Shown here one piece after another: positions 4,462-62,211 of a stretch of DNA of 64,000 bases. The notes under the pieces were generated by a model. The model was not told the DNA's origin and did not search any database. It saw only the letters and a program-made list of their open reading frames with translations. Source of the stretch: Intoshia linei (lineage: Eukaryota; Animalia; Orthonectida); assembly GCA_001642005.1 (NCBI GenBank), contig LWCA01000055.1:1890-65889 (forward strand). Direction: 5' to 3'. A program made the position numbers and the translations under genes. Position 1 is the first letter of the stretch, and each line of letters opens with the position of its first letter.

Positions 4462-7400
4462 ATGAAAAATTTATATTTGATTGTCTTGTTTTTCGCAATC
4501 ATCTCTGTGTCTACCACAAAAGTAATTTTATTTATAAATTTATAAAAAATTCATCACGTTTAATTTAAACTAGCATATTTACACAAATGGAGGTGCACTA
4601 AAAAGATTGGTATTTAATTGTCGTATTTATATTAGGATGACCAATATATACCAATATACATATGTATGTACGTCGTTTGAGATAAAATCTAATCATTGTT
4701 ATGTATTAATGATTAATAATAATTCCAAAATTATTTCGTAATTATATCATCGGTACACAACCAATATCAGTGGGTCATTCCAGTTATACATTACAGCATA
4801 TTGATATTCAAGTTATACATGTATATTCAGAATTAACGCACTACAGAACTGGCGAAATGTAGTGAAAATATCGTTTTCAGTGTTAAAAAAATAGAATTAT
4901 TAATTTTTGTAGTGTATATCACTATAAAGTAATTAATAGTGGCTTCACTGTATTAATATATCTCTAAAATACATAGATTACATGTATTAATGTATATTAT
5001 TTTATATAGCGTCGTAGTATTCATCTTAGTAGTAAACGTTATGTCGAAAATGGGTTGCATGAAGCAGTTGATAATACAAACAATGATGACCATGACCATC
5101 ATGATAATGAAGTAAAAATAAAATTAAGAGGTATATTCGATTCTATTGGTAAATCAGTGAAAAGTGGATTGAGTAAGGCCGGAAATGCCATAAAAAAGGG
5201 ATCAAAAAAAGTATTTAACAACGTGAAGAATGATGTCAAAAAGGCCGGAAATAAAATACAAAAAACGTTCAAAAATGTGAAGAATGGAGTGCATAAGGCC
5301 GGAAATGCCATAAAAAAGGGATCAAAAAAAGTATTTAACAACATGAAGAATGATGTCAAAAAGGCCGGAAATAAAATACAAAAAACGTTCAAAAATGTGA
5401 AAAATGGAGTTCATAAGGCCGGAAATGCCATAAAAAAGGGATCAAAAAAAGTATTTAAGAACGCTAAAAATTTCGTGAATAATGCCGGAAATACCGTGAA
5501 GAATATGATAAATAATGCTGGAAAAATTGGAAAAAAAAACAAAAATTCAAAGTTGAAATTTAAGAAATTTAAGACGATTACTAGTCCTATGAATCGCAAA
5601 ATTATTACAAGTAAATTATGTTATATTATTTATCTTATCAAACATTTGTTATTAAATGTTTTAAATTTGATCAATTTATAATTTAGGAACAGCTAAACAA
5701 TATAAAAGGGATGCACTAAATGAAAACATGTGCGATGATGAAAAAACCCATCATCCATATGAAGTATTGGAAGGTTGATTAATTAAAAAATCAAATTTAA
5801 ATTACGTTTATTTAGATATTGATCCACAAGATTATGAGGAGAAAAAAAATGAAATTGCAAACCTTTTTTCACACATTTCAGAAGTGTTTAATGTTGGTTC
5901 CTACAAAGTTGGAGAATTTTTCCAAAATGATGAAGATATATCACGTAATAAAATTTAAATGTAATGATACATGTACATTGTATGTACATTGTACAATGTA
6001 TATTAATATAATTTATGTGATTTTGTCACATTAAAAGTAATTTATATTCACACTGTGCCTTATTTTACAAATGCAAACCGCTGAAATGTGTATACACTAA
6101 TATTTTAAAATATTTTTTTAACATGTAAATACTTTTTTTTTTAATATTTAAATTAATTTAATTTAATCCAATGTAGCAACATTATAAATAATGAAAATTT
6201 GCAAAGTTTTTATTTCTAAACGTATTCTAGTCTAGACCAGCGATTCCAAAATGCCGTCCGTCTTTATGCTAGTAATTTCGTTTTAGCGGTCCGTGAGAAA
6301 TTTTATATTAAATACTAATCCGTGGAGAAAAAAGTGTGGGACCCTTAGCCTAGACCAGTGGTTTTCAACCGGGGGGTCGCGAAATTTATCAGGGGGTCGT
6401 GAGAATTTGAACACAGTATAAAATATAAATAAAACTGAATATGCTTTTTTAATATTTTCATTTATGTGAATTTATTAGATGTTTATAAGGGGGTCGCGAA
6501 CACAAAAAGGTTGAAAACCACTGGCCTAGACTATTCGTTAAAATCACAAATTTCAAATTTTTGGTGAATAGACGAGTCTCCATTATATTACTACACTATA
6601 TTTTTAATCTTATTTCTTACTTAATAGTTATGTTTATATTTCTGATAGGACCAGAAGTGGAAGAATTGGTAGAAATAATCATAGACCAATTGGATAATAT
6701 ACGAGAAAGATTTGGGCTAAGATTTGAAGAAATGTATCAACGCTTCATGAAATATTACATTTTCAGTAATTTATTCATTAATAACAATTTATTAACTTAA
6801 TTTATAGTACATTTATGTATATGTATTGTTATAAAATTACATTGTATTCTGTTGTATCTATAAAATGAAACAATTGTACAAAAAACGATTACATAATTTG
6901 TGAATTCTGTGTTCCACTAAATTATTATAAATTTTAATTCGATTTACCTCTAAACTCGCCATAAAATAAGTTTACGATTGAAATTTATTTGTAATAATAA
7001 TTAGTAAAACCAAAATTAAATCAAATTATGAACCTATGTTGAAATAAAAATTACAATAACTTTCATCTCATTAATCTTAATTAAACGATAAATACTGATT
7101 TTACTTATTATTATTTTAATTTTACATCTTATGTGTCGTGAATTTAATTTTAAACTATACATATTATATGTATTATCATATAACTTTATTAATATATTAA
7201 TCAGCAAACTTTTTAATTTAAAGACATATTTTTTAATTTATTATAGACAATGAGACTAAAATCTTAAAAACAATGCAATTATAGTTAAACCCTATAAAAT
7301 GATATTATAATGCTTATATTTTTTAAAACTATTCCAAAATCTGTTTAATAATATTCCAAGACTTGTTTTATTTAAAAAAAGGGTAATTTTAGGTTTTGAC

Positions 7401-10400
7401 TGAAGGTGTAATTTTCTGAAGCTGAAATTTACGACAATGTTCATTGTTTTAAAACGCGTCAAAGAATTTATTTTTTTTCAAATTGTATGGTTGATTATAT
7501 GTTTAAAAAAAGGTAGAATTCGGTTTTTGACCCTGAAGGACTCAACTTGGGAAATGAAACTGATATATAAACATTATGCGTGAAAAACTATATTAAAAAT
7601 TGGCTTTTGTTAAATTTTAGATAAAGGTAACACACGGACACACACAGAAATTCAATTTTATATATAAACATTTTTAGTACATATACTTTATGATAAAGTC
7701 GTTTTATCATAACTAACGTCATATTAAAAACTAAAGTCAGTTTTATTTTTGATTTTTGATCAGACGTGTCAAACTAAATTTGCTTGTCGGGCGAAATCTT
7801 TTTTGCATTATGGTTATTGCGTTATTATCAATATTTATTTATAAATCAAAAAAATTAATTATAATTAATTTTTAACATGTTTAATTAATTTATATATCAG
7901 ATTATAAGGAATGTAATCCAGTTACAAGAGAGGAAGCAATGGAAGATTACTGTGTACAAGAGGCAATGAGTGAAATTTTTGATATTTTTGATCAAATCAG
8001 TAAATTTATATTTAAATATGTACTGATACATCTATTGATCAATAGATTCCTTTATCATAACGCCATAAAAAATGACACGTAAGATGTGAGTTTGGGAGGT
8101 TGACATTTAGTTTGCGAACACGCCCGGAAAAAATAAGTTTATTTAAATAAAGTTGAACACACACACACAAAAATCGCGAAGCATATTATATAGGTAAAAG
8201 TATATTATTATGTATAATATTATACAATGTTGGAAAAGTGACAAAAATGATGGTCCATTAACTAACATTTTTAGAAAAAAATTGTCCGCGAATCAATTAT
8301 ATTGTTGTCCTATTTTTTATTTATATAAAATTGATATTGACATTAATAATAATAAACTACTAATATTAAAAAATTAGTTTCAATAAAAATGACTCACTAC
8401 AACTACAGATACAATTTATTTATGTAATAATTACAATTTATTTAGATTTTGATGATAGAGAATGTGATTTGATTGCTTCAACTGATAATTTCCATAGTAT
8501 TTATTATTATTATATATTATTATTATTGTATACATAAATTAAATAGTCAACGATTTTGGACACGCACTTGCAAGTGAATTTTCATGCTTTAGTAATAGTA
8601 TTGCTGATATCTCTGACTTCGTTGCTAAATATGATTTGCCAGGTATATTGTTCTATCAATTATAAATAGTCAAATTAATATTTAAAAATTATAATGAGGT
8701 AAATTTACGTACCATTATTTTATTACTACAAATAAAATTAATTAGACACTAGTTGACGGTTATGTACTACGTAATACTTACAAAAAACCTAGTTCTGCCG
8801 AGGGCGGACATTTTTATTCTACCAAAAAAATAAATTCAATAAGAAAATCTTACTTAAAAATGTTAAATTCACTATTAGAAAATCTTTAAATGGTGGATCC
8901 CAAACATGTATCACCAGGACCAGTCATTAAAAATTATAAGTGTTAATATTCATTTAAAGTGAAGTATCCCACTTAATTTTATTGTAACATGTGTAAAGAA
9001 TTTTAAAAACAATTTTTTCATCCCATTTTTTTAATCATTAGAGAGAATGTATCATCTATAAAATAAAATTAAAACAATAAAATCCTAAAAATTGAAAATA
9101 ACCGGTATTTCCTTATTTAGTGTATGGTATATTAGGTGTAATTATATAATTATTCAAATATTCAAATTCATACAAAAATCAATTTAAATGTAACTTTATT
9201 TAATATATATTCAGTTTTTATGTTGTTTCTATCGATAATTATGTTGGTAATTCTTTTGATGTGTTTATCGTTCTTTATGAACCATTTTGTTTGTTTAAAT
9301 TCATTTATAGCTTATTTATTTTGGTTTTTATAGATGTTTTAATTCCTCTTTAATTAACCCGAAAAACTAAACATAAAATTTATTATGTAATTAAAATGAA
9401 TGTCATAAAAACCAAAATAAATGAGGTAAATTTTTATTTTAAAAAACAAAATGGTTCATAAACATTGACAACCCATTAAAGGAATTACAACCACAACAAC
9501 ACATATATCTTTGACAGTTTTTAATAAATATAACTTTTATATTATATTTTAATAAAATCTTGTATTCTATTGTATTACAATTATAAATTAATATTTTGAA
9601 TTTGAATACAATAATAATGTATAATAATAAAGATAATAACACACTCTTAAATCGTACTAACCAAAGGAAAAAAGTAAATTAAGTTGTTAATCTTATTTAT
9701 ATATTAAAATATTAACATAAGTTATATTTATCAAAAACTATTAAATTTATATGGGTTTCTATGGTTGTAATTCCTTTGGTGGATTGTCCATGTTTTGTGT
9801 ACCATTTTTTTTAAATTTATTTCTAGGTCATTTATTTTTGTTTTTACGAAATTCATTTTAAGTATATAATGAACTTTATGTATAGTTTTTGGGGTTAATT
9901 ATGAGGAATTCAAATATCATTAAAAACCAAAATAAATGAGCTAGAAATGAATTAAAAAAAAAAAAAATTGTCCACAAAGCATGATAAACACATCAAGGGA
10001 ATTACCAACATAATTATCCATATAAAAAAAATAAAGCTCATTATACATAAAATAAAATTATATTTTAAATTTATCTCAACATTTTTGTATGAATTGCAAT
10101 AATTACATTTAAGGGGTAAATATTAACCGATTTCATTTTTTTGGGTGATAAATGCTTAAAATCAAAAAAGGCACCCACATGCAAAATGAGTTTTCTAATA
10201 AAAAAAGACACATCAAAAGTGGACACCCTAATGATATATGTTAATGTATATTGTGTATAATGTGCGCCAGCTTTCTGTTTTTTGTATTAATTTTTATATT
10301 AATTAATAATCTAAATTTTTGTATTAATAAATTAACAGACTTAGAAATTTAAAAAAGTATTTATTTCGGGTCAATTTTACCAATTTTGTTATAAATATAA

Positions 10401-11183
10401 AAATGATAATAATAAAGTTATATGGAAATGTGTAAACTTTTATTGTTATAAAAATGTTATTGCAAATTGGGAACTTTTTTTGTGTTTGCAATTTATGTTA
10501 ATGTTTATGATTTTAAACTTAATCCACAATTTATCTTGAATAAAAATACATTTTTCATTTTTAAAAAAAGGAGTAATTTGGATAATTGGTCAAAACGATA
10601 TAAGATTTTGTAAATGACATTGATGATAATGTGGATAATTTTTTAAATCTTTATCAGATTAGGTATTTTTTATAATTTTAGGATGGTTTAAATATAAATA
10701 AAAAGGATAGTTGTGGTTTTTCATCTTGAAGGACTTAATTTCTGAAAATAAAATTTGTGATAAAACATCAGCCTCGAACAACTGTAATTGAAATATGGAA
10801 TTTTTATAACTTGACTCCTCTTATTTTCTTAAATAAGCTGGAACAAACAGACCGACAAACCGAGAAATCAATAAATAAACAAATATACATTTTTACATTA
10901 ACTAAATTACTAGTTAAAAGTTTTGCAAAATTTTTGAAAACCACAATTACAAATATAAAATGAAACTATTAATATATTTTGTACATTATTGTACATTTTA
11001 GATAACAAAGAAGCCATTATCGTGTTCATGGCCAGTGTTTTGACAAAATCATATATAGTGGGAATGGAACTCCATCAATTCCAAAATCGATTGGAACAAT
11101 TGGATCAATTAATACTAAACAACGAAGATATAAATGGAGGAAATCCATTGCCGCAGCTCATTAGTTTAGATGATAATAATTAA
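4462..11183 (+). CDS. Gene A: secreted precursor (~485 aa) with signal peptide, acidic/His pro-region, cationic amphipathic tandem repeat and Cys-containing C-terminal domain; family not recognised
   Basis: Phase-compatible GT-AG exons 4462-4521, 4574-4609, 5010-5610, 5687-5773, 5816-5944, 6649-6765, 7901-7999, 8446-8496, 8547-8642, 11002-11183 sum to 1458 nt, open throughout. Signal peptide MKNLYLIVLFFAIISVSTTK. The exon structure is supported by the paralog at 14630-18626. Confidence 0.75.
5174..5460 (+). repeat. Coding tandem repeat, 120-nt (40-aa) unit, ~2.4 copies
   Basis: KAGNAIKKGSKKVFNNVKNDVK-KAGNKIQKTFKNVKNGVH repeats almost identically; the sequence lines starting 5221/5341 and 5281/5401 match. 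Confidence 0.95.
6356..6523. mobile_element. hAT (Buster/Charlie-like) MITE
   Basis: TIR CAGTGGTTTTCAACC...GGTTGAAAACCACTG with perfect 8-bp TSD GCCTAGAC. A degenerate second MITE (6238-6347) abuts it after GTCTAGAC. Confidence 0.9.
8749..10910 (-). mobile_element. Helitron-family copy in the last intron of gene A, containing a foldback insertion
   Basis: CTAG plus hairpin and AGTTCTGCCGAGGGC at 8749-8805. Family-internal blocks at 8810-9095 and 10540-10910. The far boundary is approximate. Confidence 0.6.
9135..10110. repeat. Foldback element with internally palindromic arms
   Basis: ~9140-9500 is an inverted copy of ~9755-10110 (AATTCATACAAAAAT / ATTTTTGTATGAATT; ATAATTATGTTGGTAATTC / GAATTACCAACATAATTAT). 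Each arm also has an A-A' structure. Confidence 0.75.
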
Positions 11184-11499
11184 TGCATACATGTAACTGA
11201 AATACAAATATACTAAAACATGAATTATTTAATTAGTTTTTGTTATTCGTAGCGATTTGCTAGTTAATAGAATTATATACATTATGTACTTATTAACACT
11301 AAATCACTAAAAAATGACATTATGTAACAATAAGTACAATTTGTTAATAATAATTTATTATTAATAAATAATTATTATAAGAACTGATGCAACGATTAAA
11401 CAATAACTATGAAAAGTTGGTATACTATTTAAATTTATTTTATTTAAAGTATACAATGAACTAATTCCATCTACTACATTAATATATAATGCTTTGAGT

Positions 11500-12794
11500 A
11501 ATTTTTAGTTTAAATTTTCATTTTTTTCGATTTCTGTATGATAGTTTCTTTAGACACTGTTGTACTGTTTGGAAAATTGAATCCATCATCTTTTCCACTA
11601 TCCCATTCCAGTTGGTATATAGATAGTTTAGACTGAACATATCGATACCACTTCAAAATTTGTTATATAAATATTGCATATTTATATTCATGCTCATTAG
11701 TAGAATTATTGAAAATAGTATCTTGACACAAAACTTCCATAAATCGTGTAAAATCGATACCATAATTAACATCAAAATTGTTGGGTTCTATTTTGGAAAG
11801 TCTAGGAAGGAAATATTTGTTTGGTATCACAGAGGGAATGATTTCTCCAGTATCGAAGCCATTTAAATATAGTAAATCCATTTTATTATCTGGTAAAATT
11901 ACCTTAACTACATCGGGATTAACAAACATTATGGAATCTGATGGCAAAAAATTCGCAATGTACCCAATAGGAAGTTTAGCTATTGCGGCAGCTTGAAATA
12001 TAATATAGCTGTAAACTCCGTTTTTCATAAAAATAGTTCGAATAAATTATCCACGTAATGGATTCTTTGTGTCCCAGTTTTTGAGCATGATTTTGTACGA
12101 TCACGTTACGAAACTTTGTATAAACACTTTCAGGTGGATAAACAATTTTGTTGTACTAATCAATTGTCGTGCAATGAAAATGTGGATAAAATAATTGGCT
12201 ACAGCTTTTAAATGATTAGTATACTCGTAAAACGTAAAGAAATCCAATGTATCTTTAAACAACAGTGTAAAGTAAAAGCTATTGTAAGGTGTTTCACAGT
12301 TTTTTCGGTTATGATAGACACGCTTTTGAATGGTAATATTCTCGTACAAAATTGTTGTCGTGTAATTCAATATCCAATGCAGTAGCAGTGTAAAATTTAT
12401 CAGTTGACACTGTAATGTATTTTTTTATTATTGAACCAAGATTGTTTTGATCACATTGAAACTTGTTCTTAACACTTTTAGACGACGTCAAATGACTACT
12501 ATTTAACCCAACGGTAGAGTTTGGATTGACATCTAATTTACTGTATTCTTTATCATCAATATTCTTCATTACGATGTCACAAGAATCCTTTTTCCTGGAT
12601 TTATTTTAATCGTCTAAATTTTTATTGTAATAAATATTTATTGGAATGTTACCTTTAATTTTTATATCATGAATAACAACATTGTTTTATATTTTTTCGA
12701 TAAGTCTAGTGCTAGTTTCATCATTAATGCAAATACCGGAAATATTAAGTTGGTCGATATCGATATTTATATCGTTCCATTTAGACTTGTTCAT
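11500..12794 (-). pseudogene. Decayed intronless ORF (~430 codons) of unknown origin
   Basis: ORF pieces 12309-12569, 12101-12370 and 11663-12028, plus an upstream MNKSKWNDINIDID at 12794, link through stops and frameshifts. The region looks less AT-rich than its flanks. Confidence 0.55.
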
Positions 12795-13429
12795 AGTTTG
12801 ATTTTATTCTTTCTCTAAAGGTAAAATTAAAAAAATATTTAGTTTGTATAAATTGCTCAATTCAAACCAAAATTAGTTCCAACAAAAAAACTCTAATGCT
12901 GGAAGCGGATACATGTATTATTTTTAGTAATTACCGATATATTATGCAGTATATTCAATTTTTAAAGTTTTTTAAAATGTTAAAATATTATTCAAATTTA
13001 ATGTTGCAGTCAAGTAAATTACTGTAGAATGAAAAGATAGTAACTAATATTTATCAATGCTAAATAGCACATTTTATGTTGACGCGACTGATGTAATTGG
13101 CTATTATACATCAAAATAATTAAAATAAAATGCAGTTAATAATTGAATATGTGCTTTGCTTTCACTGGTCAACGGTGTCGATATGATTTTAGTCATGTCG
13201 AATGAAATACCGATTTACAAAGGAAATGTGATAGTGTAATTTTAATATACAAATTGTATTGTGTTAATGTCACAATATTAAATGTTCTAATATTGGATAT
13301 TGAATTTAAATTACAAAATAACCAATCATTTATTTTGTCTAATTTATGACATTATAACGGTTTTTTATCCGTACTAATAAATATGTATAATATGCTATGC
13401 AATATTTTTAGTGCGTGTCAGTATATGTT

Positions 13430-14460
13430 ATTGATTATTTCAATAACTACCAGTCTTAAAATTTTATAAAGTCTCCATTTCAATTACAGTTTTTTCTGGG
13501 GTGTTAGCAAAATAATTTTTAATCACCCAAACTCACATCTTACGAGTCAAAAAGCCTAATTATCCTTTTTTTTGAAAATCAAACTTGTTAGAGAATTTAA
13601 AAAAATATATAGTCTGATACAGATTTTAAAATGATAAATATTATCATCAATTTAAATTTAAAAAAAATATATCTTCGGGCCAAAACCCCAAATGACCCTT
13701 TTTTTATGAAAACAGCCCTGTAAGATGATCAATTTTGTGTATGTTACGAATATCCATATTAAAATATTTGAACGCAAAAAAAACACACCTACTTTTGCCC
13801 TAAATGTCCTTAAAAAAGGATAATGTACTGTGAAAATTTATACTAAATTTAAAATTGAAGCTTACTAAATTCAATAATTAGTAATTAATTTGTTGCTATG
13901 ATGTAAATTAAATTTTTTTCTATCAAAAAATCGTTTAAAGTTAAAATATAATACATTTAAATCGTTACAGAAATTACTTTAAGATGCATATTACAGCAAA
14001 AATTGAATATTAAAGTGATTTTTTGATCGTGAAGGCATCACGTTTTCAGATTAAAATTTTTTATGTGTATTAACTGGATGTAACTGTATCAACTATATTA
14101 TTTTTTAATACCTAGGACTATTTTCATTTTTAAAAAAAGGGTAATCTGTGGTTTTTATCGTAAAAATCACTTCTCTAGGTTGGTGATTTATGATTATGTT
14201 TATGAGTTTAAACACTATTCCAAAATTTATGTTGTATACAATTCTAGGACTCGTTTGACTTAAAAAAAAAGATAATTGGGGTTTTTTAATTAAAGAACTT
14301 AAATTCTGAAAGTGAAATTTGCGATAAAACATGACACTCGAAAAATTTATTGAATTTTTAAAGCTTGAGTCTTCTTACTTTCTTAAATAAACTGATACAC
14401 AGATAGACAAATAAATAAAAATACATACATTTTTATCTAAATTACTTTATATACGTAAGG
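13430..14460. mobile_element. Helitron-family internal fragments in both orientations
   Basis: 13435-13720 matches 46370-46630 (+); 14020-14460 matches the 56516-56962 and 10540-10910 type (-). Confidence 0.6.
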
Positions 14461-15299
14461 TGGAGATGATGATGATGATATTGGATCAGTTTTAACATTT
14501 CCTATATAGATAGGTTTATCAATTTAATATATGAAATTGACAAACTAAAATGAAACATTTACGAATAAAATTTTAATAATTTATTAATTATATTTTACTA
14601 TATAATATTGAATTTTTTTTTTTTGATATTTATATAGTTCCCTCGATGGTCTCTGGTAAGTTTCGTTCATCCAACAACATTTTATCAATAGAATGTAAAG
14701 ATTGCGATAGTGTCCAAATTTTATTTCCAACTTGAACTATTCCAATCAAAACATCACTCATGTATTAAACAACGTCTTCAGGTCCAGCTAAAATGTACAT
14801 AGTTATATAATTAACATTTACTTGCACAAATTAGTTAATGGATATACAATTCAAACATCATCTTTTTAAAAAAAAGTAAATTATAGGTACTATCCAAACG
14901 TAGACCAAGAGGATGCATTTATAATGAAAATTAGTACAATACACCATTATTTCTTTCAGCAGACTTATATTTATCAAAATTAATATATATTAATTATTTA
15001 TAATTAATAATTATAATTATTATAATTATAATATAATATATAATATAAAAAAAGCACTTTTGAAATGATAAAACGAGTCAAAAAATAATAAAATGTTATC
15101 GTTGATTTATATTTACAATGCGTTTGAAAACAAAAATTTTATATTAAAATCATTAATCAAATGAAAAAGAAAAACGGATATTGCTTAAATAGAATTAATC
15201 AATATCAAATAAATTAGATTTAAACCACAAAAATTATCAAAATTTTCTGATTCAAATTAGTTGATCATATATTTATAACAAAAAATATGTTACAACATT

Positions 15300-15430
15300 A
15301 AAATTTTTAAATGGCCGATCTTTCCTTAAAATACGTTTTAACATTAAGAATGATCGTTCTACTGAATCGGAAGTGCATTGCAAAGTTGTAAATCACAATA
15401 TAAAGATGATTCCATATTTCCTACAGGATT
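15300..15430 (-). mobile_element. hAT-like transposase C-terminal remnant
   Basis: QCTSDSVERSFLML resembles the TSxxVERSFS dimerisation motif. Confidence 0.5.
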
Positions 15431-18019
15431 TATAATATCATTAATGTGAGAGTAAATTTCTTTGATTTATAAATAAAATATAAACCAAAGGATAGGCAAT
15501 CTTGACAGAGCTAAATTTTCCAAAGTATAATAGTGAAAGGAAAAAACAATAGTTAGGAAATGTAATGAGATGATCAGATAAGCTTGAGAAAAAGAAAACG
15601 ACTGAAAAATTTATTAGGAAAATAAAATTTAAAACTGTTTAAATATAAAATTAACCATTTAGTTAACATGAAAATGTGAAAGTTTTAAAATTTAAATGTA
15701 AAAATTAAATGTTTACTGTATAATACAAAATGTCTACTTATATAGTATTCACAAAAGAGCAAATAAATTTTGAAAAAATCGAGCACTATAAATTGAAAAA
15801 CGAGTACATTTTTACATTCCGAGTAATCATGCAACATTTGTATTAAAAAGAGCAGATGTCAATTATTTTAGTGTATATGAGTATTTCGATCACTTTACTC
15901 GTTTTTATCTACTCTAATTATAACAGTGTAAATATATATACTTAAAGCTTTATTAAACATAAAATCACCCATGGATCATGGGTCATGGTATTATATTATA
16001 TAAATGTTATTATATATTACTAGGTTCCGGTAATTCATTGATGAAATTAATAACTTCTCCAATAGCATCAGTGAAACAAGATATTTTGTCTAAACTGTTA
16101 CCAAATTCAGAAACTATAATTTGGCAAATTATAATTATTAAATTAAATTTTAATAAACAAATATAAATTAAAATGAAATGTTACTGGAAGCCATGTCATT
16201 AATATCAAAATTGGGACATATTCCATTTTCGAAATCTAAATTGAAAATATAAATTTTTTTATTTTTCAACTGTTAAATAATATGATCAATGATTATACAT
16301 AAATTACTTAAATGTACTTACCTATTTCAGATAAAATTTCAATAAGTTCATTTACTGCCTCAGATGTACATTCATCTTCCCAAATGTCAAATTTGCGTGC
16401 AGGGTCACAATTTTTGAAATCTATTTTAAATTTATTGGTAGTTTTTAAAAGTAAAATTACTAAATGCATAAAATTGCATAAATATTTCAAAAACTTTCTG
16501 GAATTTTCTTCCTTCATTTTCCTCAAGGCTATTTAATTTATCTAATATGATTTCTACTAATTCTTCTACATCAGCAACTAAATGTATTGTATAATTACAT
16601 GATATTTATTTAAATTTAATCAAGACCCTTTTTTTTCATATTGTTTCGTTATTTCGTATATTATAATGCCATTATAGTTAAAAATTCACCTTCTGGATCA
16701 GATTCAAAGAAATTTTTTATTTTTTCAATTCCGCTCTCGAATTTACCGTGTACACGTTCAATCATATCTAGCCAGTTTTTTCCATTTTCAAACATTTCCT
16801 GCTTTTCAATTTCTAAAATTTAATAAAACAAATTTTTTGTTAGATTCATTATATTTCATGTTAATTAAAATTAGTAAATTGTGTTACATTCGAATTTTTT
16901 ATTTGGATGCTCTTCATCTTTATCTTTACGGCATTTTTTTTTTCCATTCATTTCTTTTTTTATTTTGATTAAAGATTTCATTATTGGATGTGTACGTTTA
17001 TCAACTGACCCATGTGTTAAATCGGCTATAGCGTCATTAAGTTGTCTTTTAGTTTCTATGACAGTTCTTTTTACTGTGAGTTTAACGTTGTTTTTCTTTT
17101 TTGCCTCTTCTACATCATGGTGGGCTTTATCAACTATATCTTTTTTGCCTCGCATTACACTTCTTAGCTTACTTAAATCATCGTCAATTTCGTCCATGTT
17201 GTCATCATCATCATCATTTTGACCATCACGTTTCAAAAGTAATTTTATTACTCTTTTCTTTAAAATATTGTACTATATTTAATATATTGTAGTATCATTT
17301 TAAAAATTTATTATTAATTACTATTATTAATATTGATATACATGTCATGTTGCATGTTGTCATGTAGATGTTAAATTTATATAGACCAGGGGTGTCAGAC
17401 TCAATTTGCTCAACGGGCCAAATGTGAAAAAAATTATGTTAAAACTAACAGATTTAATTAATTAATATATATACACTATAGTATTTAATAATATATTGTA
17501 TTGTAAACAATTATTTATGAACCTTGATTGATAAATCCTTTCCCAAAATTAGTTCTTTGTGGTTGTTCATCTATTACGTTAATAACAATATGATTATTGT
17601 CACCGCTTAGATTATTCGGCCTGACATCTATTAGTAAAACATATATAATAAATAATCAAGCTAGTATATATATTGTATACTAGCTTGAGTGTTATGTTCT
17701 TCGTACAAACATTAACGAGCTCTGCCGAGTACGGCCTTTTTTAATTCAAAATTTCTATCAAAAAATACATTCAATAATATTAGCTTACATAAAAATGCTA
17801 CTATTCACCACAGTTAACACTCGTAAAATGTCTACTTTTTTGTGAAAGTGATCACGTTTTCCACTATAGGTACAATTATCATACTACCATAGTTATGGTA
17901 CTAATTAAACTAATTAAAAAAATAATGAGTCATTATTAAGGACTTAGACTGTATATGTATTAATATTTATTTATTATATTTATCTAAGAATCTAAATGTA
18001 TTAAATATGTAATCATTGT

Positions 18020-18250
18020 CATCAGAGCTCAGTTTCGGATTTCAAATTTTCAGCCAGGGGAACAAAATAATTATAATTATTAAGGGGCTAAACTGATGTA
18101 ATGCATTTAAATTAAAATTTTTGTAATATGTTTTTTCTTCTAGTTTTCATTCTACTAAATTTTTCAACAATGGCATCAAAATCGAGATTTTCGACTAGTT
18201 CTTTCGATGGTCAACAAAGTGAAGTGTGATAATTCAACTTAAACTGCTGT
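18020..18250 (-). mobile_element. hAT transposase C-terminal remnant
   Basis: ELVENLDFDAIVEKFSRMKTRRK is a typical hAT dimerisation-domain tail. Confidence 0.55.
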
Positions 18251-19517
18251 TATTAGCATAAAAAATAATTTATAGATTGATGATCATTGATCATTACATA
18301 AAACGTATACAATAATCACAAACATAATTCAATAAATGCAATTTCATGGGTCCCAAAAAAAGTTTGGTAATTTAATACAAAAATTAAAATATTTTAGAGG
18401 TACATTTGTTACGCCAAGGGGCTCTTAGATCCACTACTGCTTGTGCTAGTTCAGTTAGGAGCCAAAATTAATTGATCTTTTACAACTGGTTATTTAATTT
18501 TATCAAAATGAATGTAATACTGCTTCCAAGCACTAAATTTCCTTCTCTAACAATTTCTCGTACATTTACTTGTGTGTTTTCAATTAAACTATCGTTTGTT
18601 TCATTTTCTGCATTCGGTGTTATATCTTTTAATAAAAACATGTTAATATAATAATTAATCTGAATGCTTATAATCTTAAATAAATACTTTATTTAAATTT
18701 AAAGCTAAAATATAATTAAGACTACACATTAAGGTGTTAACATTTTTCTAAAACATAAAATCCAAGGTTGTACGGCATGAGAAATGAGTTAAAACTAACC
18801 TCTATGATTTTAGTATTGCAAAAACATCAGACTACTCAGCGATTTAAAATTACTCGTTTAATTTGAAATTAACTTTATTTTGATTGTTAATTATTAAATT
18901 TATTATAATTTTGAAGATGATTAACACTGTCATTTAATAATTCATCATCAATATACTTGATTCACACCTTCTCACGAAGATATTGGACTTTGTGTATTGC
19001 ACGTTCGGCCACTTCGTTTGTTAGAGCAACATTAAATGGGGGTATGGAGGTATAATTATGTTTTTTTAGAAACATAGACAATAAAAATATTTAAAATGAT
19101 CAACCTCACTCGAATCGACATTTTTCCAACACCCCATTCTAGATTATATTATTTTACATGAAAATACACTAGATGCGCACTAGTCGCTCTATTCTTGAAT
19201 ACGTGTGACACCCTAATCGACATATTAAAGAATTATTTTTAAATTTTCACAATTTCAGATAAAACTAATTTTATCAATTACATAAATTTAAATAGATATT
19301 AATTTTAAAATATTTCTGGCATTAATTTTTTTATAATTAGAAATTGCGGACAAGTTGAGTTATTTTAAATGTTTTTAAATTTTATATTTTAATTTCTTGA
19401 TATATAAGATAAAATGTGTCCCTATAAACCCGAGCTAAAACTTAAAAACGGGAAAATTAACTAATATTACAAACTTACATTTTAATGGTGTTTACATTGC
19501 ATGTCATACAATATTAT

Positions 19518-19754
19518 CAGTGGTGGCTCTTCATTGAAGTTTTATGGGCTACAGTGCAGTGTTATAATTAAATTAACTGAATAAAATTAACTAAAATTAT
19601 TTAATTAAATTCATACACTAACAGTGCACTGTTTGTAGCCTGATATTCGTAAATTTCCTCGTGTAACAGTATTACAATTCAATACATGCCAAATACATGT
19701 CTATGAATATGTTCATGCAGTTTCACTAATTATTTTGTCTACGAGCCGCCACTG
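19518..19754. mobile_element. hAT MITE (Tip100/Ac-like termini)
   Basis: CAGTGGTGGCTC...GAGCCGCCACTG with perfect 8-bp TSD AATATTAT. Confidence 0.85.
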
Positions 19755-21470
19755 AATATTATATTCAGATTAATCCTTATTATTATTATTGTTTGAATAC
19801 CATTATGTGAAAATTGTACATGGCCACCTTTTGTGTTCCTTTCATTCAATTTTTGGTCGGCCCTATGTCGAAGAATATGCATGGATGTGACATCTAATTA
19901 ATTAAATTCAAATTAAATTATTACAAAATCATTAATATACAAAACTACAATTCAAAAAAAAAATAATAAATTCTCCTAAAATTTTAAAAAGAAACCAAAA
20001 TTAAACCACCACGGTCAACTTTAAAGTTCAAAGGTCAATATAACGCGTCGATGCTAAATTATATTACATTAGTTTAAATTAATATACTAAATTAATTTAC
20101 AATTTAGTATTTTCTTTAATGTTTAACAACTTAATGTTAAGTTATATTAACCATTTTTAAAATAAATTTCATTTTAAAATTAATAAGTATGACCTTAAGA
20201 CATGATAATTCCAAATATTATTTGGAAAACTCGTTTAATTTTCATTTAATTTTTAAAACTATTTTGAAAATGGTTTAGCGATAATCTCAACAATGATAAA
20301 CATATCAACAGTTATATTTTATTACTTTATTTCACGAAATAAGAATAATTTAAAAAACTGTGCATTTCTTTTTATTTGCTTTGTACTAACAATCCTTAGT
20401 AAAGAAATAATTAATTTACAAAGTGTGCAATGCATAGTATCATTGTATTGCATATTATACTTTTTAGCTCAGAATGTAGATAAAAACATACTTGAACATT
20501 AGGGTGTCAAGTGATTTTTACCTAGTTATATTTTCCTTTACTGGTAGGGAAAATCGTATTCGTTCTCAAAATCGACAGATATGATGCAATTGAATTTCAA
20601 TACATTGTAATACATTGTAGACAGCACATTTTTTAAAAGCATAAACATTATCATAAATCACAACCTCAAAAAAATGGTAATTTGAGGTTTTAGTCGTGAA
20701 GCTATAAGATTTTGAAATTAAAATTTATCATAATTTTTTATTATTTTAAAATCTGTATTTATATAAATTAACTAGCTTTACTGTTATGTACTTCGTAAAA
20801 ACAGCAGATAGATTTGCCAACGGTCGACTTTTTAATTGATTATATACAGTGTGTACCATTTAAAACAGTGCAATTGAAAATAAGAAGTTTATCAAAAAAC
20901 ATTTTCACTAGTAACACCCAAATTTGATCAATAATAAAATTATTTGGATATTTATCTAAAGTATTTAATCCTTACAAAACTATGCTGATTTTCAAAATTG
21001 AAAGCAAAAAATTTCACTTTTGAAATGTTAAAAAACACCAAAAAAGTAAAAATTAAAATTCAGAAATTTCAAACATGATTATTTGTAAAGTGAACAACTT
21101 AAATTTAACTTTAATATTTGGCTTACTTGGCTAATTCTAAGTTATACATAGCAATAAAATATATTTAATTTATGACACGTAATTACAATCACGTCGCGTG
21201 ATTGTATTTTATTAGAATATTTTATTTTAGGCACAAAGTAAACATTGATAATAAAATAAATTTTTACGAATATTACATGTTATTGTATGATCATTATTAT
21301 AATATATTATAAGCTCATTGAGCAGTAATTTGTTCATAATTTATATTAATACCGCCTTATTTTGGTTTGTATACAAACCAATATAAATTTTTGAGTGTAG
21401 TTTTTGGCATCTATACATGCAATTGTTTGGTAAGGGTTAAGAAATAGAAACATAAAATTATTTAATTTAA

Positions 21471-26100: not shown

Positions 26101-29100
26101 GTTTATAATTCGAGTGACTATTATTAAGAGATTAAAATTATTTTTCAATTAAAAATAATCTTGTTGCGATTTTTTATTATAAAGTATTATAATCAAAATA
26201 TTTTACCTTTTTTTTCTTGGACAGATTACAGTGCCAATATAATTTAATTGAAATATAATATTAGATTAATTAATATCTAATCATTATTTATTATTAATCT
26301 CGCCTTATAACTACTGCAGCACATACATACTTTACGCTATTGAATATTTGATTTACGTTTATTGTTTTTATATCAATATCAATTTCAATTCAATTTTATT
26401 GCAATTTTTTAAAATACTAAAAATGACCACAAGAATTGGAGATATTTTGGTTGGTCCATATGTCGGTTTCATTTTTAATGAACAGAAGCTACCTACTAGT
26501 AAAAATGTTCTTTGTAGAATATTGTCAAAAAAGAATCAAAACATAATATTGCCATTTCGTGGTATTGCAAGAGAGATTTTAGATATATATTGTAAAACTG
26601 GATTAAATTTAATAGGCATTGAACCTATTTATGTTAAATTAAAATATTTATTTCAAAATTACAAAAATGCATTAAGAAATCCTAATTTTTATGTATCAAA
26701 CAATTTTAAGCATGACTTAAATGCTTTATGTGAGGTTGCCAAATTCGAGCAAAGCAAGACACTTAGTGAAGATATAGATTTTTTCGAGAAGCAAAAAATC
26801 GGAACAGGATATATGGCCAGGGAACAAAATGATACTCCACATAAAAAAGAAATATTGGGTACCAGTAAAAGTGAAAAAAACTATTATATTAAAAAGAAAA
26901 ATTCGTATGGCCCGTCAATGTGGATCTTATGGTAGTCCATCATTTAATTATGATATGTCAACTGAAGAAAATATATTTAAAGAGAAAGACGATTTTAAAA
27001 TTAATATGTAACGCGTATGTAACTCTAAGTCAATTTTAACACGAGGGGCAGCTATATTAATGGTAAATTATTAACACTAATGTAAATTAAGGTTTGGCAA
27101 CCTTTTTCATTTTGTGGATGACTTTTATCAAACTTTACACATGATAAATTTTATAAAAATTTTATTATAATACAAACAAATAAATGTTTGGCGTAGGTAA
27201 TATCAAATCATGATTAATTTTGATAAATTTATTATTCACGTTAATTAATGTAACAATGCATTCTAATCAAAATTTTAATCCCATTTTTTATGACGGTTAT
27301 ATATTGATTGATAAAAATTTAAAAATAAATCATTTACTCAAAGGGCCACCAAAATTAATATGTGGACCACTGGTTGCCGACTTCAAATACAAATAATGTA
27401 TATATTAAATTTATGTTAATTAAATAACATGTATTATTATTAAAGTATATATTAATTTAGGGTACATCTCATAAAACCAATAGAAGGAACAGAATGTTGG
27501 TTAGAATGAAAGACATGAAAACTATTCGGAGTTTAGTTAACAAAATTGTCAAATTTGTTATATATTTTGATAGCAAAAAATTTGGAACCGACGAAAAAAT
27601 TGCAGTGGTGGCAATTGACACCGAAGCAGCCAAAGAAATTGTTTACAATTGAATTATAATTGAACATTGAAAAAATACACACGTTTAGTGCTAATTGCCC
27701 TTGATTCTTTGATGGGTGTGACACCCTAATATACATTGTACATTATGTATATTATACAATTTATATTAGGCATTTTATATATACACTTTTTGTAATACAT
27801 TGTATATTTATTTTTTTAAACGGTGATTAAAAACATACAGTGAAGCTACTATTCGCCAAAATCGGAAAGTCAACATTATTTGGTAAATAAAATAACGTAT
27901 TTTCTTGGAACCTGCTGACAATGTAGTATATATCATTATTGTTAATACTGAATCCAGTATTTATCTACACTTTCCAGTTCTCTAGTTATCCATATATTTA
28001 AGGCTTTTCTATATAACATTTTTGGTCTCATTTTGCAAAAGAGTAGGCGATTTTTTTCACGTTAGCCAATCCCTCTTAATCGTCGTGTCACTAATTATAA
28101 TTATTCATCAGTTATTTATATTTTCTTTATGTAATTTTTTTAGTGTCTACAAGGACAGTAAAACGGATGATATGATTATAAGTTCCATTGTGTACAAATT
28201 TAATTTTAAGGTATTTCCTTATTTATATAAATTAACTAGCTTTACTGTTATGTACTTCGTAAAAACAGCAGATAGATTTGCCAACGGTCGACTTTTTAAT
28301 TGATTATATACAGTGTGTACCATTTAAAACAGTGCACTTAAAAATAAGAAGTTTATTAAAAAACATTTTGACTGTAATAATTAAATTTGCTCATTTATAA
28401 AATTATTTGGATATTTATCTAAAGTATTTAGGAAAAAGTTAGAAACTTAAAATTATTTAATTTACAATAAATGTTCAAAATGACCACCATCAGATTGGAT
28501 ACATAAATCAATGCGTTTAAGGAAATTGTTGTAAACATTAGATAATTTTAGAGTGCTAATTGAGTTAATACTGTTAATGATATTGTTTTTTACGGATTCC
28601 ATATTTGAAAGGGAATTTTTATAAATTTTAGATTTTATTGTTCCCCACAAATAAAAATCACATGGCGTTAAATCAGGAGACCTTGGTGACCATATACTTT
28701 TTGATATTATTTTTTCGTTGAATTTTTGATTTAACCAATTCATGGATATAAATAAAGTATGGCATGTTTTAAACTCGATTAATAGCTAGACAAGAAATAT
28801 TCTTTTACTCGTGGTTAACATTTCAAAAAATTAATATGAACTTGTTTTTATACAGTTGATTTGTTTTTTATTTCGTTAGTGCACTCATAATATGAAATGT
28901 TTTAACAAGTGCACTGTTCTGAATAGTACACGCTGTACAACGAGTGTATAATTGTAAGAACAATCCAATTGTTACAACCCTAAAAAATCATCATAGAAAA
29001 CGTGAATTCCAGAAAAAATAAAAATTTAAATACATGTAGTACTTCTTTCTTCTATGATGAATTTCTGATAAAGCAATGTTTCCATTGAAATTTAATCCAT

Positions 29101-55869: not shown

Positions 55870-58800
55870 ATGCCGTCTCCGACTAAAGATGATGCAATTA
55901 ATAAAGACTATCAGGATAATAGCGACGATAAAACAGGTAAATAATGATAAATATGATTTATTAATAATTTTCAAAATAAGGATTAAAGGATAAAGTAAAT
56001 GAAATGAAACAAAAAGTAGATGAGATGAAAGAAAAGGTTAATGAAATAAAGGAACAAATTAGCAATTTTTATTTGCAAGAATCATTTCATAGTGACGATG
56101 ATTTCATACACATCAACCGAATTACTCCTGACTTTAACGTAAACAAGAATAATGAAGGTTTGACAACAAGTAATGAAAAAGTTGAAAAATCTGAAAAAGA
56201 TAAAAGTTGCATGGATAATACAAATAAAATGTTAAATTTACGAGACGTGGGTCCGATTGACAATAATTTTGTATTTATTGACCATATTCTTAACAACAAT
56301 CCGAAAGACATGCAAAACAATGTTAAAATTAGATATGATGAACAAATCAAAATGGATGAAGTTAGAAAAGATGATGGTATTCGAAAATATGAAATAAAGC
56401 TATTAAATTCAGAAAAAACTGATTCAATGGAAAATTGTACGGTTAAAAAAATTGGTGGGAAAAAATCTAAAAAGAAGAAAAGTAAGTTTTTTCTGTTTTA
56501 TACATTTCCTAGGACCTAGTTGACTGCTATGTACTTGGTACAAACAGCACCTAGATCTGAAAAGGGTGGACTTTTTTATTCTACAAAAAATAAATTAAAT
56601 AATAAAATCTTACTTAAAAATAATACATTCTCTATTATCAACCCTGAAATTTCATAAATTAACATTGACCGTAAAGATATAAGATTTTGAAATAGACATT
56701 TTGAATAATAAAATTGCACATTTTTTAGAATTCTAGGACTCATTTCAATTTTTAAAAAAATGATAATTGGGATTTTTAACCTTGAATCATTAATTTCTAT
56801 AAATCAAATTTATGATAAAATAGGACCCTCGAAAAACGATATTCGAAAATGGTAGTCTTAAAACTCCACACATATTACTTTCTGAAATAAATAGTAACAA
56901 AAAAATCACAGACATACGTTAGTGAGTATATTTTTAACTAAATTACTTTATGTAAGTTAAGATATTACGTTTTAATAATAATTTTAAATAGAAACTGCAA
57001 AACCAAATCTTCAACTAATGTATATTGACAAAAACGGACAATATGTTACACTCGATCCGAAAACAACTGGAAAAAAAATTAGAGATCAAATGACATTAGA
57101 TTTAGAAAAGTCAAAACTGGAAAATGAAAGAATTGAAAATGAAAAAATTGAAAAAATTCGAATTGAAAAGGAAAAAAAGGAAAAGGAAATTGAAAGAATT
57201 AAAACGGAAAAAATTGAAATGGAAAAATGGAGAATTGAACAAGAAAAAATTAAAATGGAAAAAATTGAAAAGAAAAGGATTAAAAATGAAAAACTTAAAA
57301 AAGAAAAAATTGAAAAGTATGAAAAATCTGAAAAATTAAAATTTGAAAATGAAACTGCAATGTTGGAAACTGAAAAAAAGATTGAAAATGACAAAGTAAA
57401 TAAAATGGAAAATAAAGAAAAAGTCGATAAAGGAAATGAACATATTTATGTGATTGAATCTAATATTGAAACTGAAAACATTGAAAGTAACCAATTAACA
57501 GAGATGCTAGTTGAAGAAGCTGTAAAAAAACTAAATTTTTTTGATTTGATGCAAATGATTAATAAAATTAGTTATTCTGATAAATTAAAATTTCTAAAGT
57601 CAATTGAGAAAAGTAACAAGATTTTGAATCAAGAAAACATCATAAATGTTGATAAAAAAAGTAAAGGTGAAACAAAAATTGTTGAAAAAGTTGTAAGATT
57701 TGAGGAAAGTATTATAGAAAAATTTGAAAAAAAGTTCCAAGATTCTATAGCTGATCCCATCAATAAATCTTTACTATATTCTGTGCATAGTGCAGTTGAA
57801 GCATCAAATAGGTTACATAAAAAAAAGAGTATTGATAACAGTAAAGATGAAGAACATAGATCAGAGTACATTTTTATTATGAAATATTTTTATATATTTT
57901 TTACTCAATTTAGTATGATTTTGATATATTAATGTCAATTTTAGGGTTTTTCACGTTTTTTCTTAATTCGGAAACAGTAGGCTTTTATGTTACAAAAATT
58001 TTTCGGATTCAAAAAAATCCCTTTGAGGAGAGCCTCAATGTATTTTACGGTAGATTCGGATCTGTGTATCGAGCACAGCCTTCCGGTTGTAAAAATATAT
58101 ATAGTCTACATCAGTGGTTTCCGATTGGGGTCTATGGAGCCCTTGGGTCAAAAACTATATGCCTAGGGATAAGTGAGATTCAAATAAAGTATAAAAAATA
58201 AATTATTAATTTTGTTTATTTTTAATATTTGTTGTAATACTGTTGTTTTATGTTGTCTTAATACAGATGTTGCGAATTTACCACAATGTTTAGACGGCAG
58301 CTATATTATTATTTAAATAATACCATTTCAAATTCTCTGGAAAAAATCGACTTTTACTGATATTTTTTTGAAAAATTCGATTTTACAACATCTCGCCAAA
58401 AAAATTCAAAAATACATGAAATCCCAAAATTAAAATTAGTCTTTTCCAAAATTTTTTTTAAAATACAATTTTACCAAATCTCATGAGAAAAACCGTTAAA
58501 TGTTTCATAAATTTTATATTTCACTAGCTTGACTGTTATGTACTACGTACAAACAGAATCTAGCTCTGATGAGGGCACATTTTTATTATACTAAAAAAAT
58601 TGGTAAATTCGGTATTGGAAATCTGTGGACTAGGATCAATATTTACATTTTTAATTTTTATTTTAATCGAAATATTTAAAAAATATTGGTTGATAATATA
58701 TTAAAAATTATTTTTCATCGGGAATGCGTAGATTCCTCGGGTTGAAATTTTGTATGTATATCAACTGGAATAAGCTCTATTAGAATAATTTTTTTTTTTA

Positions 58801-61800: not shown

Positions 61801-62211
61801 AAAACTGAATTGCAAAATTTGAAAAAAATAGGTCAAAACATTAAAAATGCGCAATACCAAAGCCATGACAATGTTAAAAAAAGCAAAAAAAAATTTAAAA
61901 CAGATTACGTACTTTTGAAAAAATGGCAATATCAACAATCATTAAAAAAATTCTACATGATGAGTCAAAATTTAAATGAACTTGTACCACCATACGTGCA
62001 ATATCAGCCTGTTCCGTATATTCCTAATAATGATCAAGTTCCTCCACAAAGCACTATACAATCTTTTCCAAACAATTTTTACAATCATCCAATTTATCCA
62101 ATTAATCGAGTTGACGTGAATTATCCTCCATACTACCATCCATATTCACCTCGATACAATAATAAAATTGATCACTACGATGAAATATCAGATTCAAACA
62201 TTACAAAGTAA
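55870..62211 (+). CDS. Large Lys/Asn/Glu-rich low-complexity protein (~1400 aa), function unknown
   Basis: Phase-compatible exons 55870-55936, 55981-56481, 56991-57865, 59379-62211 join the 171-, 304- and 948-aa ORFs. Contains an EK coiled coil, a CxxC..CxxC motif, Gly-Gly repeats and a Pro/Tyr tail. Confidence 0.7.
56516..56962 (-). mobile_element. Short Helitron-family copy in an intron
   Basis: CTAGTTGACTGCTATGTACTTGGTACAAACAGCACCTAG ... TAAGTTAAGA|T. Confidence 0.7.
58112..59272. mobile_element. hAT Buster-like element containing a Helitron
   Basis: CAGTGGTTTC...GAAACTACTG with TSD GTCTACAT/GTCTAGAT. Confidence 0.7.
58524..59191 (-). mobile_element. Non-autonomous Helitron, internally deleted
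   Basis: A|CTAGCTTGACTGTTATGTACTACGTACAAACAG ... ATAAGTTAGGA|T; the body closely matches 33960-34645. Confidence 0.85.

Follow-up and report, generated by a model that had tools for sequence, protein, structure and literature searches.

A candidate secreted protein family of the orthonectid Intoshia linei that combines a five-cysteine domain with a variable charged exon

Sequence comparisons indicate that two genes lying tail to tail in the genome of Intoshia linei, an orthonectid parasite of nemerteans, belong to a protein family that appears to be restricted to orthonectids and has at least seven loci in this species. The two genes, called A and B here, are found in a 64,000-nucleotide (nt) window of contig C1784 from the 41.6-Mb assembly, with a G+C content of approximately 25%. 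The window is the whole stretch of DNA that was analyzed, and positions are counted from its first letter unless another locus is named. Gene A (4462-11183, plus strand) is intact, is spliced as modelled, and is abundantly transcribed. Gene B (17257-14633, minus strand) is a truncated or decaying copy. The family proteins are probably secreted, as judged by eye from a signal-peptide-like first exon, and they would consist of three parts: a 20-codon signal-peptide exon, a charged low-complexity exon, and an acidic, all-helical domain with five cysteines. For the clade formed by A and a locus on another contig, C, we tentatively favor a mechanism in which a secreted, charge-balanced pro-protein is processed at basic sites and its polycationic part binds anionic surfaces.

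Gene A has nine exons, and all of its introns are of the GT-AG type. Its exon structure is exactly the one proposed earlier from inspection of the DNA letters (the sequence-only reading), with an open frame of 473 codons, and the product is identical to the public hypothetical protein OAF71384.1 (P0002, 473 residues). Phase 0 occurs only at the first junction, and the seven junctions after it are in phase 1. Exon 1 (4462-4521) contains the ATG and a 20-codon signal-peptide-like segment corresponding to residues 1-20 of P0002, and it ends at a phase-0 GT donor. Exon 2 (5010-5610) encodes an RR..KR opening, a stretch of 30 acidic and histidine residues leading to KLR, and a lysine-rich amphipathic segment of 160 residues, and it has a phase-1 donor. 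A tandem repeat within it (5157-5463) has a period of 120 nt (40 residues), with 2.6 copies and 94% matches. Exons 3 to 8 all have phase 1-1 borders. Exon 3 (5687-5773, 87 nt) encodes a conserved KR-D site and the first conserved cysteine, and it is followed by exon 4 (5816-5944, 129 nt). Exon 5 (6649-6765, 117 nt) is the most conserved exon of the family. Exon 6 (7901-7999, 99 nt) has two conserved cysteines, while exon 7 (8446-8496, 51 nt) and exon 8 (8547-8642, 96 nt) have one each. The last exon (11002-11183) ends in a TAA stop.

The splicing of gene A is supported by a single public run, X1, the only one that contains the locus. The kind of this run is not on record, and it behaves like RNA. 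Its word depth is approximately 7,000 to 160,000 in the exons and approximately 10 to 100 in the introns, an exon to intron ratio of 100 to 1000. Contigs from the run, aligned to window positions 5200-11190, contain at least six of the eight junctions as GT..AG joints: 5610/5687, 5773/5816, 5944/6649, 6765/7901, 7999/8446, and 8642/11002. The first junction, 4521/5010, lies outside the aligned region, and 8496/8547 is not among the joints listed, beyond which six further joints exist. Two of the supported junctions, 5944/6649 and 8642/11002, had been singled out as doubtful. The joint at 5944/6649 has a depth equal to that of the neighboring joints, and depth drops to approximately 10 right after 5944, so that read-through to the TAA at 5958, where transcripts might otherwise have ended, is not sizeable. 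No exon skipping was found among the well-supported joints of the gene in this run.

Five of the introns of gene A are long for this genome, at 488, 704, 1135, 446, and 2359 nt. The median intron length in I. linei is 57 bp (PMC6543705). Intron 4 contains a pair of inverted arms of approximately 40 nt (6283-6535), with ccagtggttttcaacc in one arm and its reverse complement in the other. This pair looks like a small insertion of the miniature inverted-repeat transposable element type.

Gene B is a paralog of gene A that has lost part of its coding capacity. The two proteins are 35% identical over 142 residues (BLASTP, E 9e-29), and the 117-, 99-, and 51-nt exons and all phases coincide, as the sequence-only reading had noted for a convergent pair of paralogs. 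The word pair proved too narrow, since genome searches with exons and profiles found at least seven loci. The exons of gene B all lie on the minus strand. Exon 2 (16888-17257) encodes KR..KR, an acidic run, KLR, a mixed-charge segment of 80 residues, and the first cysteine. It is followed by exons homologous to exons 4 to 8 of gene A, of 123 nt (16690-16812, 51% identical to the corresponding exon of locus D), 117 nt (16461-16577), 99 nt (16322-16420), 51 nt (16185-16235), and 93 nt (16021-16113). The last exon (14633-14787) has an in-frame stop at 14767-14765, seven codons in. This codon is a sense codon in locus D, the closest paralog of B, and approximately 44 codons are left untranslated behind it. 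If exon 2 of gene B is spliced at the donor homologous to that of D (after 16888), the codon across the junction is also a stop. An alternative GT donor after 16930 avoids this stop and deletes 14 codons. The pair had been taken to extend to 18626, and for gene B this did not hold up. No start or signal-peptide exon was found on the minus strand from 17258 to 21000, 3.7 kb upstream, and exon 1 of gene A as a query against the whole genome found only itself. The public annotation of gene B is a fragment of 158 residues (P0001).

The pattern of substitution is consistent with this loss. Between B and D the ratio of nonsynonymous to synonymous substitution rates (dN/dS) is 0.22 across the five core exons and approximately 1.0 across the last exon. 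The 43 codons after the stop still align to D, with a dN/dS of approximately 1. These values suit a truncation of not very recent date. Because it is decayed, gene B is a poor witness for a second type of variable segment. In these comparisons gene B was read across its stop only with an X at the stop position.

The family comprises A and B together with five loci on other contigs. They were identified by genome searches with single exons and exon profiles, and the count is a lower bound. Only public proteins were used at full length (P0001 for the gene B fragment, P0002 for A, and P0003 for C). Locus C (contig C2242) encodes P0003, a protein of 423 residues that is 45% identical to A over 262 residues (E 3e-83). 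Locus D is on contig C2203. Loci E, F, and G are divergent. E (contig C1508, L014:1128-2038, plus strand) and G (contig C1101, L016:1454-825, minus strand) are on contigs of approximately 2 kb and are incomplete, and G consists of two weak matches in the correct order and on the correct strand. F (contig C2601, L015:6772-4193, minus strand) is intact as far as it was traced. Over the two best exons identity is 71% between B and D and 51% between A and C, and it falls to 20-30% for E and F. The exon lengths (117 or 111 nt, and 99 nt) and the phase-1 borders are kept in all seven loci where they can be delimited. Codon position 2 starts six of the seven internal exons and the last exon of A, and the same is true of B to G where exon borders can be delimited. 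The first exon of A, C, and F has 20 hydrophobic codons and a phase-0 donor. By eye, its second residue is a lysine, its hydrophobic core spans 12-14 residues, and it finishes with small residues.

Two small exons were noted beside the family. In gene C, an additional histidine- and glycine-rich exon of approximately 10 codons (L006:9556-9527, minus strand) stands between the signal-peptide exon and the variable exon. It is found only in the public model and has no counterpart in A. On contig C1784, approximately 5.4 kb upstream of gene A and ahead of the start of the window, there is a 20-codon signal-peptide-like exon with a phase-0 GT donor (L005:864-923, minus strand), followed after an AG at approximately 775 by an exon that is first basic and then acidic. 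This is at best a candidate family member, and similarity to the last exon of the family is not significant against shuffles (p 0.05-0.6).

The C-terminal domain is the constant part of the family. It has approximately 230-250 residues and five conserved cysteines, and it is encoded by symmetric phase-1 exons. In A the cysteines are at residues 236, 336, 349, 371, and 395, with spacings of 100, 13, 22, and 24 over 160 residues. This spacing is unlike the six-cysteine pattern of saposins. The sequence-only reading had claimed five cysteines common to A and B, and this is borne out, with four in the annotated B fragment and the fifth in exon 2 of B. No internal duplication of cysteine-containing units was significant against shuffled sequences (p 0.08-0.95). 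The domain is strongly acidic, with a net charge of -34 in A and -38 in C, and the low dN/dS between B and D (0.22) shows that it is under purifying selection. An AlphaFold2 model of A contains five long helices in the domain, with predicted local distance difference test (pLDDT) values of 55-78 and lower confidence elsewhere. The cationic segment and the domain are both modelled as all-helical at low confidence. The model of the gene B fragment (pLDDT 42) is not usable.

The long exon after the signal-peptide exon differs in every copy in length and in charge, in agreement with the hypervariable cassette proposed before. In A the stretch of 30 acidic and histidine residues is followed by 160 residues with a net charge of +42 that are built on the 120-nt repeat. 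Over 120 residues of the cationic part of A, the helical hydrophobic moment is approximately 0.6. C has 66 acidic residues (net -38) and then 66 basic residues (net +24). B has a short acidic run and then approximately 80 residues of mixed charge without a repeat, as the sequence-only reading had described for the segment after KLR. D has approximately 85 residues of aspartate, glutamate, and asparagine repeats and almost nothing else, and F has a stretch rich in asparagine and lysine. A series of basic motifs accompanies these segments. In A to D there is a KR before the acidic run, and the run ends with KLR (A and B), RKLR (C), or KLKR (D). The series reported for the two genes in the window, RR..KR, acidic run, and KLR in A and KR..KR, acidic run, and KLR in B, was thus confirmed. 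A and C also have a KR-D site (Tyr/Phe-Lys-Arg-Asp) behind the cationic part, at the start of the C-terminal domain. The consensus (K/R)-Xn-(K/R) is matched by the KR ahead of the acidic run in A to D, by RKLR in C and KLKR in D, and by KR-D in A and C.

Database searches support the conclusion that no known family is likely to explain this architecture. The searches outside I. linei covered protein databases, Pfam, and PDB; other orthonectid genomes were outside their scope. A profile of exon 5 against 1.84 billion representative proteins found only three I. linei proteins, and a profile of this size (38 residues) cannot reach distant relatives. Word-indexed protein searches matched only the query itself. 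Pfam gave only composition-driven matches, all below the cut-off. The best is ApoLp-III (PF07464) to residues 87-200 of A (E 6.7e-5, 23.5 bits compared to a cut-off of 36.3 bits), and it also matches C. PDB (2026 copy) gave no match by sequence or by profile, Foldseek with the gene A model gave no match at E <= 0.001, and the ESM Atlas gave nothing usable. VIA-align matched the low-confidence repeat region to nothing more specific than generic helix bundles; their Z did not exceed 11.7, short of the level of approximately 13 that the program itself gives as a caution for helical bundles. The family had been described as unrecognized, and none of these resources gave a match that explains it.

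One candidate that was tried is the bicycle genes of aphids, which came to mind from the AT-rich DNA and the uniform exon phase. The gene-structure classifier for these genes, with coefficients from PMC9168663, gives gene A a linear score of -29.07 and a probability of 2e-13 (threshold 0.72). There is no Cys-Tyr-Cys motif in P0001, P0002, or P0003. Together with the lack of a PDB match and the origin of the DNA from an orthonectid, these results led to its rejection.

In the mechanism that we tentatively favor, the A and C proteins would pass through the secretory pathway as charge-balanced pro-proteins. The acidic spacer, together with the C-terminal domain, which is also acidic, would neutralize the polycationic amphipathic helix, whose net charge is +42 in A and +24 in C. 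The cationic segment would be bracketed by KLR or RKLR in front and by Tyr/Phe-Lys-Arg-Asp behind. Furin or proprotein convertase-type enzymes, which the genome encodes, could cut at these sites. The P domain of proprotein convertases (PF01483) is found above the cut-off at three or more genome loci. Once secreted, the polycation would be free or unmasked and would attach to anionic surfaces, candidate targets being host or microbial membranes and the polyanionic matrix at the surface of the parasite. The variable exon would grow by tandem duplication. Where the cationic segment is missing, as in D and perhaps in B, the conserved domain would work alone. A more far-reaching version is improbable. 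In this version the family would be a pro-protein system of its own, with an acidic, disulfide-bonded helical scaffold of undescribed fold that chaperones and delivers interchangeable low-complexity cassettes. If true, the scaffold system would be host-interface or antimicrobial weaponry, including a 160-residue array of polycationic membrane-active helices, and it would represent an independent invention of cathelicidin logic in a drastically reduced animal.

Several observations weigh against processing and release of a polycation. We infer cleavage at the KR and KLR sites, charge masking, and release, and no cleavage product has been observed. Judged by the generally known convertase consensus, the KR sites are canonical, as the sequence-only reading had assumed, but the KLR of A and B is not, because it has no basic residue at P2, P4, or P6. 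The motif series was proposed as a family trait, and it is present in A, B, C, and D. F, which is divergent and intact, has neither the RR/KR opening nor KLR, and the series therefore belongs to one clade and not to the whole family. The idea of a payload does not fit every member either, since in D almost nothing lies between KLKR and the first cysteine. The cationic segment of A is far longer than typical linear antimicrobial peptides, and in its 160 residues there are no internal dibasic-plus-spacer sites of the type found in multi-copy precursors. The domain is the most constrained part of the protein, which argues that it is the business end and not a pro-piece; its proposed role as a mere carrier is a guess. 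The AlphaFold2 model of A, made from an alignment of three sequences, has a mean pLDDT of only 46.8. The stage and tissue of the sample behind run X1 are not on record.

The main alternative, which we regard as somewhat unlikely, is that the family encodes an unprocessed secreted structural protein, such as a component of a granule matrix, surface coat, cuticle, or adhesive. Function or assembly would then rest with the helical cysteine domain, the variable exon would encode only an intrinsically disordered polyampholyte linker whose opposite charges promote condensation or matrix binding, and the basic motifs would be incidental to composition. Transcripts are very abundant, which is common for structural secretory products, and the segments of one chain come close to cancelling each other's net charge. 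Repeat expansion drives the evolution of the low-complexity acidic runs (D and C) and basic runs (A, C, and F). Purifying selection on the domain and the absence of the motif series from F also fit this role. It is more difficult to explain why KR before and KL(K)R after the acidic run are kept in four paralogs despite their changed surroundings. In addition, the cationic part of A does not resemble a random coil, since its hydrophobic moment is steady over the 120 residues. A family of host-directed effectors, comparable to the bicycle genes of aphids or the micro-exon genes of schistosomes and secreted into nemertean tissue, overlaps with both the charge-balanced pro-protein and the structural protein, and it depends on the stage of expression. 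The variable exon would diversify under pressure from the host, for instance to reach new targets or escape recognition. I. linei is an endoparasite, and the genes of this orphan family combine a putative signal peptide with symmetric exons of the same phase. The copies are extremely divergent (20-50% identity in the best exons), and one decayed copy suggests birth-and-death turnover. We nevertheless consider an effector role quite unlikely. Nothing points to expression in the parasitic plasmodium or to export into the host. The family has about seven loci and not hundreds, and its exons of 51-129 nt are not micro-exons. The bicycle classifier score of -29 (probability approximately 2e-13), the lack of CYC motifs, and a domain dN/dS well below 1 also speak against it.

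Two further explanations are less probable still. One is lipid binding or transport of the exchangeable apolipoprotein kind, in which amphipathic helical repeats of 22 and 18 residues would wrap lipid as in apolipophorin-III. The weak ApoLp-III matches of A (23.5 bits) and C suggested it, and so did the high hydrophobic moment and the modelling of the repeat region as long helical hairpins. This is very unlikely. The score is below the Pfam cut-off of 36.3 bits, and the structural matches are the generic helix bundles with Z below the caution level. The apolar face is thin (mean hydrophobicity below 0), and a net charge of +42 is unlike apolipophorins. B and D have no repeats, so this cannot be the function of the family. 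The other explanation is that the protein is not secreted and works inside the cell as an acidic-basic protein, for instance as a chaperone of chromatin or of the nucleolus; the hydrophobic first exon would then be a mis-assigned start. C has weak, composition-driven Pfam matches to the acidic regions of YL1, Nop14, and CDC45-type proteins, all below the cut-off. These matches are confined to low-complexity sequence, A, C, and F share the hydrophobic first exon of 20 codons, and the domain has conserved cysteine columns. An intracellular role is scarcely plausible.

The charge-balanced pro-protein proposed here would share features with several known precursors and match none of them completely. 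Amphibian preprodermaseptins and the linear cytolytic peptides of spider and ant venoms also have a signal peptide, an acidic pro-piece, a basic motif, and a cationic amphipathic helix; the likeness is a general one, with no sequence match behind it. Their cationic part is hypervariable as well, and a conserved leader is the shared trait of those precursors. The I. linei proteins differ in having a large conserved cysteine domain behind the cationic part, a cationic part of 66-160 residues instead of 12-50, and KLR instead of KR or a processing-quadruplet site. Cathelicidins likewise combine a conserved cysteine-containing pro-domain and a hypervariable cationic peptide in one secreted precursor. 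In cathelicidins the order is reversed, with an N-terminal cathelin that has a cystatin-like beta fold, whereas the domain here is predicted to be all-helical, and Pfam found no cathelicidin match in the family proteins. Ascaris cecropins and the styelins and clavanins of tunicates have a cationic helix, a basic site, and a charge-balancing acidic C-terminal region. Their acidic extension is short and has no cysteines, while the domain here has approximately 250 residues and is under purifying selection.

Other parallels concern gene structure or sequence composition. Schistosome micro-exon genes are likewise a secretory family of a parasite, and symmetric exons in a single phase lie between their signal-peptide and terminal exons. 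In those genes symmetric exons of approximately 6-36 nt make up most of the coding sequence, while the internal exons here are 51-129 nt plus one of 370-601 nt. The lack of exon skipping among the well-supported joints of gene A is a further difference. Apolipophorin-III (PF07464) resembles the repeat region in its repeated amphipathic helices and in a weak profile match, but the segment is polycationic and absent from several paralogs, and the match is under the curated cut-off. The bicycle genes of aphids (PMC9168663, PMC13552887) form an orphan secreted parasite family with exons that start at codon position 2 and extreme divergence between paralogs. They belong to a different lineage and number in the hundreds, compared to approximately seven loci here with exons of 51-129 nt and one of 601 nt. 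A saposin-like fold is another trait of the bicycle proteins; the all-helical, low-confidence model of A gave no specific match by Foldseek or VIA-align.

The family is of interest for the biology of orthonectids, which are among the most reduced animals. We know of nothing molecular on how they deal with their hosts or with microbes. The family has no detectable relatives among approximately 15 billion public proteins, and one of its members is abundantly transcribed, which makes it a concrete candidate for secretory biology specific to this lineage. It also illustrates how a constant domain can be joined to a charged exon whose changes come from repeat expansion. The public proteins have been listed in GenBank as hypothetical since the genome was deposited, and members such as B and D are unannotated or only partly annotated.

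Other open reading frames (ORFs) in the window have no assigned function, and Pfam gave no match for ten neighboring ORFs. Between the 3' ends of A and B (11663-12569, minus strand) are three consecutive ORFs of 86-121 residues with no Pfam match, which may be a decayed intronless gene or the relic of a mobile element. An ORF of 93 residues (28462-28743, minus strand) has no Pfam match at E <= 0.01, and it resembles the C-terminal part of a transposase of the Tc1/mariner type. A long uninterrupted ORF (59365-62211, plus strand) encodes 948 residues; it has no Pfam match, is rich in asparagine, lysine, and glycine, and contains repeated units with GG. The neighboring ORFs at 56004-57932 are rich in glutamate and lysine.

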